Positions 5,433 through 29,398 of a stretch of 64,000 nt of DNA are shown here, piece after piece. The notes beneath the pieces are model-generated. The model did not search any database and had not been told where the DNA came from. It was given only the letters and a program-made list of their open reading frames with translations. The stretch is from contig NC_043011.1 in the NCBI RefSeq assembly GCF_006345805.1, positions 67,034,464-67,098,463 on the forward strand, written 5' to 3'. Position numbers and translations under genes: made by a program. The DNA comes from Octopus sinensis (Eukaryota). Positions within the stretch are counted from its first letter, which is position 1. Each line of letters begins with the position of its first letter.

Positions 5433-5605
5433 TACAATTTTCAGAAAAGGGAATCAACGGGCTACCTATCAATATATTTGCATAAGCTTGTGTGTATGTG
5501 TGTGAGTGTATGTGTATCTGCACGTATCTCTGTGTTTGTATGTGTATACGTGCGTGAATGAAAGGCCATTTCATTTGGAAATATGATGATTAAGTAGCTA
5601 CTCAC

Positions 5606-5645
5606 CGACGACGAAAAATAAGATAAAGATACAAGATTTCGTCAT
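5606..5645 (-). CDS. Candidate first coding exon, signal-peptide-like MTKSCIFILFFVV (gene copy B)
   Basis: ATG + 13 codons + G then G|GTGAGT donor; paralogous to 26924-26963, with the same length, phase and upstream ACACAAATAAGT. Confidence 0.6.
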
Positions 5646-5707
5646 ACTTATTTGTGTTAAATAGAAGGTTACATGGAGAAATATATATCGTGGCATTTTC
5701 TAAACTC

Positions 5708-5713
5708 TTTATA
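5708..5713 (-). promoter_or_regulatory. Candidate TATA box of gene copy B
   Basis: TATAAA ~63 nt upstream of the ATG; conserved at 27023-27028, ~60 nt upstream of the paralog's ATG. Confidence 0.4.
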
Positions 5714-6740
5714 AGCGCTGCTAACAGATGTTATTTTGACTCACTAAAACAGATATAAATATGATGTATGTGATGTTATTACACATAAGTCTTTTCGTTG
5801 TCCAAAAGCCAAAGAATATATTAGACCTTTATACAGATGTTTTAGATGTCAAACATTTAAATGATTTTGAAATACTAATTCGGTGAGAATTATAATATAT
5901 TCATTGACTTTTATTTCCATCGTGCAGCCATTGTTTTCATTTCATATATACATATGTGTGGTGTGTGTATACCTGTGTGTGTCTCTGTGTGTGCGTGTCT
6001 CTGTGTCTGTATGAGAGTGTGTCTGTGCAATATATATATATATATATATATATTTATATATGCACTCGAAAGCATGTGTGTGTCTGTGCGTATAAGGGTG
6101 CTGAAAAGTTACTAATTTTAAGTTATAGAGAACACAGGTGGATCAATTCATTATTGCCTAATTCATTAGATTCTATTAGATTCATTTACTTATTGCAGCT
6201 ATCCTTCGGGTTTTTGTTCCTAAGCCTTCTAAAGCAACTCGTAATGTGGGGCTTCTACGCAGGCTTTTCGTGACACCTGTAATGTCAGGAACTCCACAGC
6301 ACATTCTGTATGTGTAAGCGTGCATGTGTGTAATAGTTTGCTTTGACAATGTAATGTCAGAGGTTCAAAATTTGTTCCAGCTTTTGAAAATTCAGTCACT
6401 GGATGTGGCGCTTAATTTTTTAACGGAATATTAAAAAGGTTCACAAAGAAATGTAAGTGGTGTTTAAGCTGGCTAGTTTTTTGTGTTTATTTGTTTTTAT
6501 TTGGGAGGTGTGGTTATTACTCAAGCATGTCTTCTTGCTGTTAGTATAGAACTGTGTTTATACCGTTCTTTGATGTTCACAGAATAATGTAGGTCGGTGT
6601 AAATCTTTTTTGTCTGTGTTCCTTGGTCTATACGCAAATTGGATTGTATGTAGACATTTTAACCATTGTATTTTATGGAGTCAGAATTTGCGGGGTATGA
6701 TTTATAAAAACGTCTTCAATTCTGCCTATTTTATAATACA

Positions 6741-8179
6741 CTAGCAGTATCGCCCGGCGTTGCTTGGGTTTGTTTCGACCCGCTGGAATTGTAATTTTGA
6801 AAAGTAAAAAGTTTGTGAACATTTTTCTGGTCGAAATACACCGAAAAGTGGCGACACAGCAGTGGAAAAATCGTAAAAAATAGGGATTTTCATAGAAAAA
6901 AGCATCTTTTTGATGTAAATAATTTTTGGTGTTAATATGGTCCGATTTGAATTTTATGTTCTACGGAAGGAAGAGCGACCCTTCTACCATACTCTCAATT
7001 TTGGTCAACTTGCGCCGCAGGGTCTCGGAGGAGATAGTGTTAGTTGAAGGTTACCATTGTAGGTGCCTGAGTAACAACCTCGCGGATTTACAGATAAATG
7101 AATTAATTACTATTTTACAGAATAAAATTAAATAATTCTTGAAAATTAATTAATATTAATATTTTTTGAAGAAAGTAAATAATTTAAAAAACTAAATAAT
7201 AATTTTTTTTACACAAACGCGAACGGGGAAAAGGGGGTGGCGAATTCGATTTACATACCTAATTTTTTCTTTTTCATGACATTGTAGCAAAATAGTAGTG
7301 AATTATATAAATACCAGCAGTACATTTGTTTTTCTGGGGTATTTTTTTCAACCTCGTCACATATTTTCCCCTTTCAATTTAAACAAGTCTTAATTAAGCA
7401 ATTACGGCAGCTTAGCAAGGTTTCAATACAGGCGTGACATCTGTATCTCAATTGTTCAAAACCCTTCGATTTTTTTCGCACGTGATGATATCATAGTGAA
7501 AACTTCAGTTATTTCTGTCTTTCACTCTGTCTGTCTCTTTACACACACTAACAAAAGCACTTCACTTACAACCCACACTTTCTGTGTCGCACAACCCATC
7601 AAACACACACACACACACACACACCACACTCACTCACGCACACATGTACATCAATGCTTTCGGAGTGAAATGTTAAAATATTGAGTTTTCTCGATTTTGT
7701 CTTAATTGGGGGTGAAATTGAAAGAAATATATTATGGCATGAGCGAATGGGGTACTTTGAAAAATCTTAGGTAAATTCTAATTGAAGAAATTGTGTGAGG
7801 AGTAAATCGTTATGTATTTATTTATTTCTGTTTGCTGTGTTTTTTTATTTTTTGAGTAGTGGTTTAAATACTTTCAGTTTAGTCTTCCTCAAATCACTCT
7901 GTCGCTATTTAGTTTCATTTTATTCGTTGCACACTGTGTGTGTGCGTTTGCGTGTGGTGTAAACCAGACTAAGAAAAGCATTTGACACACACACCAGAAT
8001 GTGAGTTTTCTGTAAATTTTGCTTAATTGGAGTTTAAATTTTAAAAACTGAACCTGGCATGACCCAATGCATTCTACTCTTAAAAATGCTAGGTAAATTG
8101 TAATTGAAGAAATCCTATATTGTAGATTTCTATAACTCCCAAAGGGAGGCAGATAAAATCTGCCTTTTATAATAAGAGA
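6741..8179 (-). mobile_element. Non-autonomous Helitron
   Basis: Minus strand reads A|TCTCTTATTATAAAAGGCAG... and ends CCCAAGCAACGCCGGGCG-ATACTG-CTAG|T: TC start, subterminal hairpin, CTAG end, A-T target. Related 3' part at 23755-24149. Confidence 0.75.
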
Positions 8180-26923: not shown

Positions 26924-26963
26924 CAACAATGAAAACTAAGATAACAGTACAAGAATTCATCAT
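26924..26963 (-). CDS. Candidate first coding exon, signal-peptide-like MMNSCTVILVFIV (gene copy A)
   Basis: ATG + 13 codons + G|GTGAGT; ~300 bp of flanking similarity to 5590-5910. Confidence 0.6.
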
Positions 26964-28489
26964 ACTTATTTGTGTCAAACGGGTTTCCTAGAGAACTACA
27001 TACAATGATCTTTTCTAAATTCTTTATAAATGCTGATAACAGATGTTATTTCTAAAATAGATATAAATGTGATGTATGCGATGTCATTATACTTCATTGT
27101 CCAATAGGCGAAAAATGTATAAAACATTCGTATGTAGACGTTTTAGATGACAGGTTTTATAGGAATTTGGAAAACAAATTGGTGCGAACTACACATTCAC
27201 TGAATTTCTCATTAATCGTGCGTTAACTGTTTTCATTATATATATATATTATATATATATATATATATATATATATATAATATATATATATATATATATA
27301 TGTGTGTGTGTGTGTGTGTGTGTGCATATATACATATATATATATGTATATACACGTACATATACATATATATATATATATTATATATATATATATATAT
27401 ATATTTATATACATATATATATATATACATATACATATATATATACATATACATACACAAACACACACACACACCATATATATATATAAAATAAAAAAAT
27501 GGAGGAATAGATTTTAATCATTCATCAACTATTATATTATATGGGCGAAGGTAAAATTTTACCTTCGCCCATATAATACAATAGATGAATTAATTGCATT
27601 GCAATTCTTAGCATTTATGTATTAGCCTTTCTGGGTACTTTACTGGCAGTATATTGGATAAATGTTATCCCATAGTGGTAACACTCACAACCCCTATCTC
27701 ACTTTATATATATATATATATATATATAATATATATATATATATACACACACACCATATATATATATATGAATGATATAATATAATAATAATAATAATAA
27801 TAATAATAATAATAATAATAATATAATAATAATAATAATAATAATAATAATAATGATAATAATAATAATAATGATAATGATGATGATGATGATGATGATG
27901 ATGATGATGATGATGATGATAATAATAATAATAATAATAATAATAATAATAATAATAATAATAATAATAATAATAATAGCAACAGAAATAGCAACAGCAA
28001 TAATACAGTGTTTTAGAATAGAAAAATGTCAATAATGAACATTTATTACATAATGTTTATTTCAAGAAGTTACTGTATTTTCAAGTTTTCGTGAATCCTC
28101 CTGACGAATTCTTCTCTTTAGTTCTGTCAGAACTAAAGAGAAATGTTCGCCAGAAGATTCCACGCAAACGTGAAGATTTGTGGGAGCTCAGCTACAGAGA
28201 ACAGCATCTCTACCTGTGAAGATGGTGAAGGATTTGTAGGCACCACTTCCCAGGGGCATTTGAACAATTATTCAAGATAAGGGAAGCCACACCAAATATT
28301 AACCATGTTCAGTAACTACTAGAAATGAATATTATGTATTCAATTCTCATTATAGACTTATTTCCTGTTTGAAAACATTGTATCTTGATAGGTTCATGTG
28401 AGGTGGCCAAAAGCTTTTGTATGGCCATTTTTAGTGGTTGTCGCGCATCTTCCCCTTTCATTAAGAAAACCTACTACAAAATATACTGA

Positions 28490-28528
28490 TTAGGTATAGG
28501 AATGACTCCAACGGGGCCAATGCTTCAT
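28490..28528 (-). CDS. Candidate terminal exon of an upstream paralog
   Basis: gcgtttttaacag|ATGAAGCATTGG...; lies just downstream of the 29138 exon. Confidence 0.35.
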   Translation of the reverse strand: MKHWPRWSHSYT

Positions 28529-29137
28529 CTGTTAAAAACGCAATGTCAAACAGCCACTTATAAGTTGGCACTTAGTAGAAATTTACAATAGTTAAAAGTA
28601 GCCAAAGACTTTTGTTCAGTATTGCATTTGCAAACAGGAAAGAGACAAAACATGAGTATATATATATATGTCATTGCTATTGTATTAAACTGTCGTATGT
28701 CCAAATTTGGCAAACTTGGCAAACTTGAAATGCTTGCAATTTGTTATGTCAGTGTAATTTTGCAAAGAATTAGTATTTTCGTAATACCTGCAAACCAACA
28801 TATATAAATATGTAGATATCTTGACTGGTAATGCAAGTAGAATCTCCCTGTAATAAAAGCACTACGTTTACACTGAACTACCAAAACGATCTTGCGTTTT
28901 CATTGTTGGGAGGTGTCTTTAGTGTTATTATTAGTCCATTCTCTATTATTGTAGTCTTACTGAAATGGCATATTACTGGATTTTCGAATATATCCTAGTT
29001 ATATGAAAAATTATATTGTTTGTTTATTACAGTAATATTCATATTGGCGTGAAGAAGGTGTGATACACTCTCATCACAACGCTAATACAAATATCAATAT
29101 TTCTTTAATGATGCCGTGTTACAAGCGTGTTACGTAC

Positions 29138-29173
29138 CTCAGGCCTGCTGGTGTCGCTTGGAAATAAATGCAA
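29138..29173 (-). CDS. Candidate 36-nt exon (upstream paralog)
   Basis: catctctttcttacag|TTGCATTTATTTCCAAGCGACACCAGCAGGCCTGAG|gtacgt; within a ~450-bp block similar to 18310-18730. Confidence 0.6.
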
Positions 29174-29398
29174 CTGTAAGAAAGAGATGTCATATTGTGA
29201 AATTGAAAATTCCGGGCAAACTATATATTTAATTGTTGATAGGTTTATTTTAGTTTATATATTGTTTATATATTGATTATATATGGATTATATATATGTT
29301 ATATATAGAGTATATATTTATATTTTTTCATTAATACTTTAATTATTTTAAAATTATTATTTTTATATTTTAAAATATTGATATTTTAGATTGGAAGT

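Follow-up and report, generated by a model that had tools for sequence, protein, structure and literature searches.

The question raised by this locus is whether short exons scattered along one strand of an AT-rich stretch of octopus DNA belong to real genes. The stretch (hereafter the window) comprises 64,000 nt of Octopus sinensis NC_043011.1, and coordinates given without another label are positions in the window. From the letters alone, the original prediction had placed a hidden tandem array of about three small signal-peptide genes on the minus strand, ending at position 29215. According to the present analysis, the window very probably holds three head-to-tail members of a five-exon gene family restricted to Octopus, all on the minus strand, of which gene 2 is intact, gene 1 is decaying and gene 3 is partly visible. 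The expected number of about three copies is borne out in the form of one intact gene, one pseudogene and one gene seen in part. The proposed end of the array was too short, as exons 1 and 2 of gene 1 carry it on to position 34742.

A composite of the candidate exon peptides was searched against a collection of 5.8 billion proteins and returned two octopus proteins. P0002 is a computer-predicted RefSeq model of 106 aa from O. bimaculoides ('uncharacterized protein LOC128249874'), and P0001 is a 'hypothetical predicted protein' of 87 aa from O. vulgaris. P0002 runs in order through exon 1, a segment absent from the original prediction, the 85-nt exon, a 36-nt exon and the exon that begins at 11103. 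The additional segment was placed by tblastn as an exon of 100 nt, exon 2. The chain proposed earlier (26963...20356...36-nt...11103-11044) was correct in exons 1, 3, 4 and 5 and had overlooked exon 2, with which the coding sequence (CDS) is open. The joined exons of 40/100/85/36/60 nt form an open CDS of 321 nt with AG/GT at every border and phases of 1, 2, 0 and 0. Gene 2 spans 15.9 kb, from 26963 to 11044, and an AATAAA at 11044-11039 overlaps its stop codon. The product consists of 106 aa, MMNSCTVILVFIVGKAMAQDCNFLQDKYCPEAKMDFSRITDEKRFCQRYKDFDHCFHTIRPCHKYYDFVYFETCEFPSNEENSSRPEMKFKTVLFTAITAMLPMHI, and is 75% identical to P0002 at 100% coverage (E 6e-48); no entry identical to it was found in the 5.8-billion-protein collection. 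The coordinates of all features are summarized in the table.

O. vulgaris and O. bimaculoides carry these five exons at orthologous, collinear places, with no difference in borders or phases. The window is 95-98% identical to a part of O. vulgaris chromosome OX597831.1 (GCA_951406725.2, locus L001) and is collinear with O. bimaculoides CM046618.1 at 49.14-49.18 Mb (loci L002 and L004), where blastn blocks have 81-90% identity and the collinear orthology covers the whole 60 kb. P0001 is a truncated model of gene 2, which starts inside exon 2, lacks exon 1 and reads through the donor of exon 4; the family as a whole is either missing or misannotated in the O. vulgaris group. Exon 2 is duplicated in the window, within a 732-bp tandem duplication (22194-22992 / 22926-23726, 97.8% identity), unlike in LOC128249874, and is single-copy in the O. 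vulgaris reference locus. Because exon 2 is 100 nt long, only one copy is usable without a frameshift. The duplication could be a structural polymorphism, a pair of mutually exclusive exons or an assembly artefact.

Owing to transposon insertions, gene 2 measures 15.9 kb in the window versus 6.1 kb in O. bimaculoides, and its intron 4 measures 7.5 kb versus 1.35 kb. Intron 4 was lengthened by a Penelope-like retroelement (12273-16960), with RVT_1 at 13835-14584(-) and GIY-YIG at 15418-16197(+), and by other insertions. The retroelement is an inverted duplication (12273-14094 vs 16960-15139, 98.7%). A tandem duplication with a period of ~612 bp is situated just downstream of exon 4 (16960-17616 vs 17572-18228, 97.7%), and the remnant of a mariner-type transposase (Pfam Transposase_1) is located at 10422-10727(+), just past the 3' end of the gene.

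Table. Positions of family exons, associated blocks and candidate exons in the window (splice borders are marked by a slash)
Feature	Positions	Strand	Length	Peptide	Remarks
Gene 1 exon 1	34682..34742	-	61 nt	MCFRVISTMKGYICVFLLTF+G	phase 1, donor gtaaac; hidden Markov model (HMM) match; 86% identical to N-terminus of P0014
Gene 1 exon 2	31089..31188	-	100 nt	VIAEAQDCNEMQSKRCRRAKLNFT*VVDGKAFC	splice sites kept; in-frame TAA at 31117-31115
Gene 1 exon 4	29138..29173	-	36 nt	LHLFPSDTSRPE	cag/...CCTGAG/gtacgta
ATGAAG acceptor at 28528	28490..28528	-		MKHWPRWSHSYT*	no similarity to family last exon; probably not a family exon
Gene 2 proximal promoter module	26964..27130	-			TATAAA at 27028-27023, 65 nt upstream of ATG
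Gene 2 exon 1	26924..26963	-	40 nt	MMNSCTVILVFIV+G	phase 1, donor gtgagt (ATG...GTTG/gtgagt); most of signal peptide
Gene 2 conserved intron-1 block	26480..26608	-			paralogous to 4078-4204 of gene 3; noncoding, frames differ between copies
Gene 2 exon 2, copy a	23199..23298	-	100 nt	(G)KAMAQDCNFLQDKYCPEAKMDFSRITDEKRFC(Q)	phase 1 in, 2 out; Cys1-3; placed by tblastn
Gene 2 exon 2, copy b	22468..22567	-			sequence and splice sites identical to copy a
Gene 2 exon 3	20356..20440	-	85 nt	RYKDFDHCFHTIRPCHKYYDFVYFETCE	cag/.../gtaaga; phase 2 in, 0 out; Cys4-6
Gene 2 exon 4	18655..18690	-	36 nt	FPSNEENSSRPE	cag/...CCTGAG/gtacgta; linker with predicted glycosylphosphatidylinositol (GPI) site (NSS)
Gene 2 exon 5	11039..11103	-	60 nt (CDS)	MKFKTVLFTAITAMLPMHI*	CDS 11103-11044
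Gene 3 promoter and exon 1	5606..5713	-		MTKSCIFILFFVV+G	TATAAA at 5713-5708; exon 1 at 5645-5606, ATG...GTCG/gtgagt
Gene 3 intron-1 block	4078..4204	-			paralogous to gene 2 intron-1 block 26480-26608
Isolated inverted last-exon copy	49902..49958	+		ILFQSLLFTTVTIMLEM*	acceptor cag; no other family exon found on plus strand

Most of the parts from which the array had been predicted were found as described. The two 40-nt ATG exons, ending in phase 1 at G/gtgagt, are present as exon 1 of genes 2 and 3; neither of their patterns occurred in 100 shuffles (0 occurrences for either). They lie within a block of 531 nt with 71% identity between copies (blastn E 2e-60) and two copies only in the window. 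The TATAAA reported ~60 nt upstream of each ATG is located 65 nt upstream in gene 2 and 68 nt upstream in gene 3. Exon 4 of genes 1 and 2 corresponds to the two paralogous 36-nt exons, which are contained in a 443-nt block at 70% identity, and the 85-nt exon has the clear borders attributed to it. Of the two acceptors followed by ATGAAG, the one at 11103 opens the true last exon of gene 2; the one at 28528 does not align with it apart from the ATGAAG itself, and the two were rejected as paralogues. The original prediction held that nothing of the array was evident from the list of open reading frames (ORFs); the 85-nt exon does fall inside a listed ORF of 97 aa. Block C (26608-26480 / 4204-4078) was discarded as a candidate 'exon 2' of a B-A-C duplication unit on account of two 1-bp indels, poor acceptors and unrelated peptides; the protein matches identified block B as exon 4 of the upstream gene and placed block C in an intron. 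Home-made splice-site scoring and an all-against-all comparison of ORF pieces exposed neither exon 2 nor the gene structure.

Genes 2 and 1 are the positional orthologues of O. bimaculoides LOC128249874 and LOC106877823, respectively, with which they have exons, phases, signal peptide, six cysteines, linker and tail in common. The product of LOC106877823 is P0014 (113 aa), with P0003 as a shorter isoform (XP_052830375/6). This gene is intact in O. bimaculoides, whereas gene 1 is broken in the window. At the codon of the window TAA in exon 2 the O. bimaculoides orthologue has AAA (K), and the O. bimaculoides segments bearing exons 3 and 5 are without counterpart in the window (deleted relative to L002/L004). 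Because of the exon-2 stop and the deletion of exons 3 and 5, gene 1 is a pseudogene in the window genome.

The promoter and exon 1 of gene 3 are also intact in O. bimaculoides (exon 1 at L002 18770-18811). No gene 3 exon beyond exon 1 was found in window positions 1-5605 by tblastn and HMM searches, and the rest of the gene may be situated beyond the window edge. An unannotated 85-nt exon resembling exon 3 (RFRIDDPCVQAITTCSAFFNKMYEEKCV, cag/.../gtaaga) is present at L002 20560-20644, 1.75 kb downstream of gene 3 exon 1, and points to a third member of the family in O. bimaculoides that has escaped annotation. Genes 2 and 3 also share a proximal promoter module (window 26964-27130 and 5646-5812; L001 6425-6591; L002 9834-10000 and 18603-18769). 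In it, ~130 nt upstream of the ATG are near-invariant for both genes in three genomes, including TTATAAAGA.TTTAGAAAA and AAATAACATCTGTT, and its conservation exceeds that of the coding part of exon 1.

At 35-64 kb of the window, the inverted relic of a last exon at 49.9 kb was the sole further family exon detected by tblastn and HMM searches. This stray exon is surrounded by a 161-nt block (49840-50000 +) that is 94.4% identical to O. bimaculoides, with flanks at ~85%. In O. bimaculoides a TAA lies within its frame, and its conservation is above expectation for a dead exon. A short interspersed repeat of ~200-450 bp occurs on both strands in at least six places (4987-5433, 9450-9910, 41020-41381, 53540-53757, 62498-62715 and 63369-63489), and one copy sits in intron 1 of gene 3, immediately downstream of exon 1.

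The taxonomic range of the family was determined by an exhaustive phmmer search with P0002 as query against 1.84 billion representatives (cut-off E <= 0.001). Among 12 matches, 10 were credible (E 2e-30 to 1e-3). These originate from O. bimaculoides (all on CM046618.1) or O. vulgaris, bear the names 'uncharacterized' or 'hypothetical', and include no family member outside Octopus, which supports the lineage-specific family proposed from the sequence. Searching the word-indexed collection with the family profile brought no addition from outside Octopus, and a third search for homologues, again with the profile, returned only O. bimaculoides proteins and a genomic read-through fragment, P0016. 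Two proteins were judged spurious as homologues: P0004, a MATH-repeat protein, and P0012, a hypothetical protein of the dog whelk Nucella lapillus (KAL8582708.1) with tandem 'RPCHKYSDF' repeats. The repeats of the latter ('RPCHKYSDFVGFQTSRNY') resemble the exon-3 peptide RPCHKYYDFVYFETC, probably by chance.

At least 10 paralogues are clustered on a single O. bimaculoides chromosome; beside LOC128249874 and LOC106877823, the paralogues of this species include LOC128249838, -839, -820, -821, -827, -749 and -936. One pair of paralogues is located ~140 kb from gene 2, with two further small genes flanking, and this locus (L003) has the family exon layout, exons 1, 2, 3 and 5 being detected in order. 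The 10 full-length members are 25-52% identical to P0002, and all of them possess a signal peptide, six cysteines and a hydrophobic C-terminus. The cysteine pattern C-x7-C-x13-17-C-x8-C-x6-7-C-x11-C is invariant in the family alignments A6 and A7. P0007 from O. vulgaris (293 aa) contains four tandem domains ahead of the tail. Pfam gave no match for the window protein or P0002, and the family is without a Pfam model. No similar PDB sequence was found with the family profile or with P0007, and no relevant literature was found on the LOC identifiers, on octopus GPI-anchored or cysteine-rich families or on repulsive guidance molecules (RGM) in cephalopods. The family is already in the public databases as unnamed O. 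bimaculoides predictions and is uncharacterised.

The gene 2 product is composed of a signal peptide, an all-helical six-cysteine domain of ~57 residues, a Ser/Asn linker and a hydrophobic C-terminus of 15 residues. Signal peptide and tail, which were called by inspection and hydropathy, support the secreted or membrane microprotein that had been predicted. The signal peptide is encoded by exon 1 and the first part of exon 2, with a predicted cut after AMA and before QDC (A-x-A; by inspection). AlphaFold2, supplied with the family alignment, modeled the domain as all-helical with a predicted local distance difference test (pLDDT) value of ~90 within the full-length model. For the domain alone the pLDDT is 87.9 and the predicted template modeling (TM) score 0.70, with helices at residues 4-11, 25-34, 36-39 and 43-58.

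Past the last cysteine the gene 2 product continues with EFPSNEENSSRPEMKFK, followed by 15 uncharged hydrophobic residues to the end of the protein, which is 32 residues beyond that cysteine. In 11/11 proteins a triplet of small residues (NSS, DSS, SNS, NSG, SST, SSS or NSA) precedes by ~6-14 residues a short hydrophobic stretch, defined as the 11-residue hydropathy maximum, at or within ~10 residues of the C-terminus. A small-residue triplet followed, after a spacer, by a short hydrophobic run at the terminus is the textbook layout of a GPI-attachment signal. An ordinary transmembrane anchor is unlikely, because the hydrophobic run is too short and nothing follows behind it. Judged by such rules of thumb, the gene 2 product is probably GPI-anchored. 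The protein would enter the endoplasmic reticulum and form three disulfides, after which a GPI anchor would replace its C-terminal tail at the N-S-S triplet. The mature microprotein of ~65 residues would then be displayed on the outside of the cell membrane and might bind either a secreted ligand or a receptor next to it. The analogy with the RGM N-terminal domain would make a BMP/GDF-type ligand a possible partner.

The analogy derives from RGM_N (PF06535), the recurring known domain in the searches, which was the top or near-top Pfam match for six queries in a constant register. P0007 exceeds the cut-off of 24.2 with 37.9 bits (E 2e-9), a total to which its four similar repeats contribute jointly. 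Taken one at a time, these domains reach 14-20 bits (E 7.5e-4 to 0.06), with residues 20-50 placed on model positions 20-50 in every case. P0010 and P0013 are weak matches. In an hhalign comparison of the family with the N-domains of RGMA and RGMB (sequences of PDB entries), FC-x8-C-x7-C was aligned with P 0.0014 and a probability of 17.7%. Both the octopus domain and RGM_N are small helical six-cysteine extracellular domains. RGMs (RGMA, RGMB/DRAGON and hemojuvelin) are GPI-anchored; the octopus anchor is predicted only. The octopus proteins differ from RGMs in their length of ~106 aa and in the lack of the RGM_C / von Willebrand D-like part and of the GDPH autocleavage site, and from RGM_N in their outer cysteine spacings. 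RGM_C gave no Pfam match for the window protein and the GDPH motif is absent from its sequence; because RGM_C with its autocleavage site was tested for and is absent, the octopus proteins are not RGMs. The odds that the family shares its ancestry with RGM_N are roughly even. A bolder and rather unlikely proposal, built on this analogy, is that octopuses expanded a family of stand-alone GPI-anchored RGM-N-like domains, in which the BMP-binding module of RGMs has become detached from the remaining protein. Such domains would evolve fast and serve at the cell surface as traps or co-receptors, with BMP/GDF-type ligands or a cephalopod-specific molecule as partner, and the array would provide cell-type-specific variants under a shared, highly conserved promoter module.

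The Ly6/uPAR proteins are characterized by a signal peptide, a disulfide-rich domain of ~60-80 residues, a GPI signal, tandem clusters and fast evolution, and their way of working resembles that of the octopus family. They differ in a three-finger fold of beta-strands, 8-10 cysteines and a C-terminal CCxxxxCN; the octopus domain is all-helical and has six cysteines and no CC pair. Membership of the octopus family in Ly6/uPAR is ruled out by the all-helical model, the six cysteines and the absence of a match to Pfam UPAR_LY6.

Several results weigh against the view of gene 2 as a functional gene for a surface protein related to RGM_N, beginning with its rate of change. A comparison of gene 2 in the window with its O. 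bimaculoides orthologue gives 31 non-synonymous and 6 synonymous changes, which corresponds to a ratio of the two rates (dN/dS) of 1.12. The divergence of its exons (0.115 per site) equals that of the alignable introns (0.112), and judged from the sequences constraint is visible in structure only, not in the substitution rate. None of the proteins from read-derived (Logan) assemblies matches the spliced gene 2 product, the annotated gene model is truncated in O. vulgaris and no more than a prediction in O. bimaculoides, and the neighbouring gene 1 is plainly dead in the window genome. All this would suit an artefact of annotation, or a relic with the shape of a gene, from which no protein is made, in a family drifting in the manner of gene 1. 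Such an explanation is nevertheless improbable in view of a structure that is intact across three genomes. In a neutral simulation at the intron rate of 0.112, the joint P of keeping the ORF, 8 splice dinucleotides and 6 cysteines with zero indels was ~2e-4; for the indels alone, 0 were found versus 3.0 expected (P 0.05). The promoter module is also better conserved than its surroundings, and the six cysteines and the architecture are retained across paralogues at only 25-35% identity. The kept structure and the invariant cysteines across old paralogues therefore indicate a functional, fast-evolving protein; conserved structure with fast substitution is common in surface and secreted recognition proteins. 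Gene 2 is presumably spliced and expressed, the evidence for splicing being comparative. Transposon fragments and microsatellites fill the window, and the paralogous blocks might on that account be taken for copies of an interspersed repeat in which 'exons' arose by chance, a case that the original prediction had itself named as a refutation. Within the available data this is refuted with next to no room for doubt: the window contains precisely two copies of each block, the blocks are orthologous and collinear in O. bimaculoides, and together they encode an annotated protein.

Regarding the C-terminal stretch, charged residues in or after the tail of some paralogues (P0005 ...FLKYI, P0006 and P0011) and the helical tail predicted by AlphaFold would fit a single-pass membrane microprotein held by its tail, or a soluble peptide once the tail is cleaved, rather than a GPI signal. 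This is unlikely, considering that the uncharged run comprises just 15 residues in 6/11 members with no cytoplasmic residues behind, and that the small-residue triplets are at the usual distance in all 11 proteins. A stronger competitor, with a chance only a little short of even, concerns the origin of the domain: it may be a new small helical disulfide fold unrelated to RGM_N, in which case the cysteine spacing would be coincidental and BMP binding not transferable. The window protein and P0002 are without an RGM_N match in Pfam. A Foldseek search of PDB with the full model gave nothing significant (top match RGMB 6z3m_J, E 9.2, TM 0.22-0.27), a search with the domain-only model gave no RGM match and nothing significant, and a profile search of PDB sequences gave no match. 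The single-domain scores are below the RGM_N cut-off, the hhalign probability points the same way, and the spacing outside the Cys3-Cys5 core differs (Cys5-Cys6 x11 vs x21). On the side of a relationship with RGM_N are the same register in six independent queries, the presence in both domains of six cysteines with Cys3-x8-Cys4-x7-Cys5 (x6 in gene 2), and the textbook GPI anchor of the RGMs.

Reading of the raw sequence has thus recovered a real multi-exon microprotein gene that was overlooked by ORF lists, and the O. vulgaris gene model needs correcting. The family consists of probable cell-surface microproteins, found so far only in Octopus, with birth and death of copies between close species and fast sequence change. 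Roles in cell recognition, receptor modulation, immunity or reproduction are frequent among families of this kind. Should the link to the RGM N-domain be true, the family would represent a natural experiment in the reuse of a BMP-binding module and a tractable entry to lineage-specific signalling in octopus. If it is not, the genes form an ordinary orphan family of small cysteine-rich proteins, whose practical value would lie in the correction of gene models.

The window as a whole is AT-rich, with a G+C fraction of ~0.33, and microsatellites and transposon fragments are abundant throughout. A LINE-like element at 56828-59290(-) contains a reverse-transcriptase ORF of 509 aa and a zf-RVT ORF; partial copies with 94-97% identity are present at 44886-45780 and 47105-48246. 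Two long near-perfect palindromes are located at 31890-32197 (308 bp, 92% self-complementarity) and 1231-1411 (181 bp, 74%).

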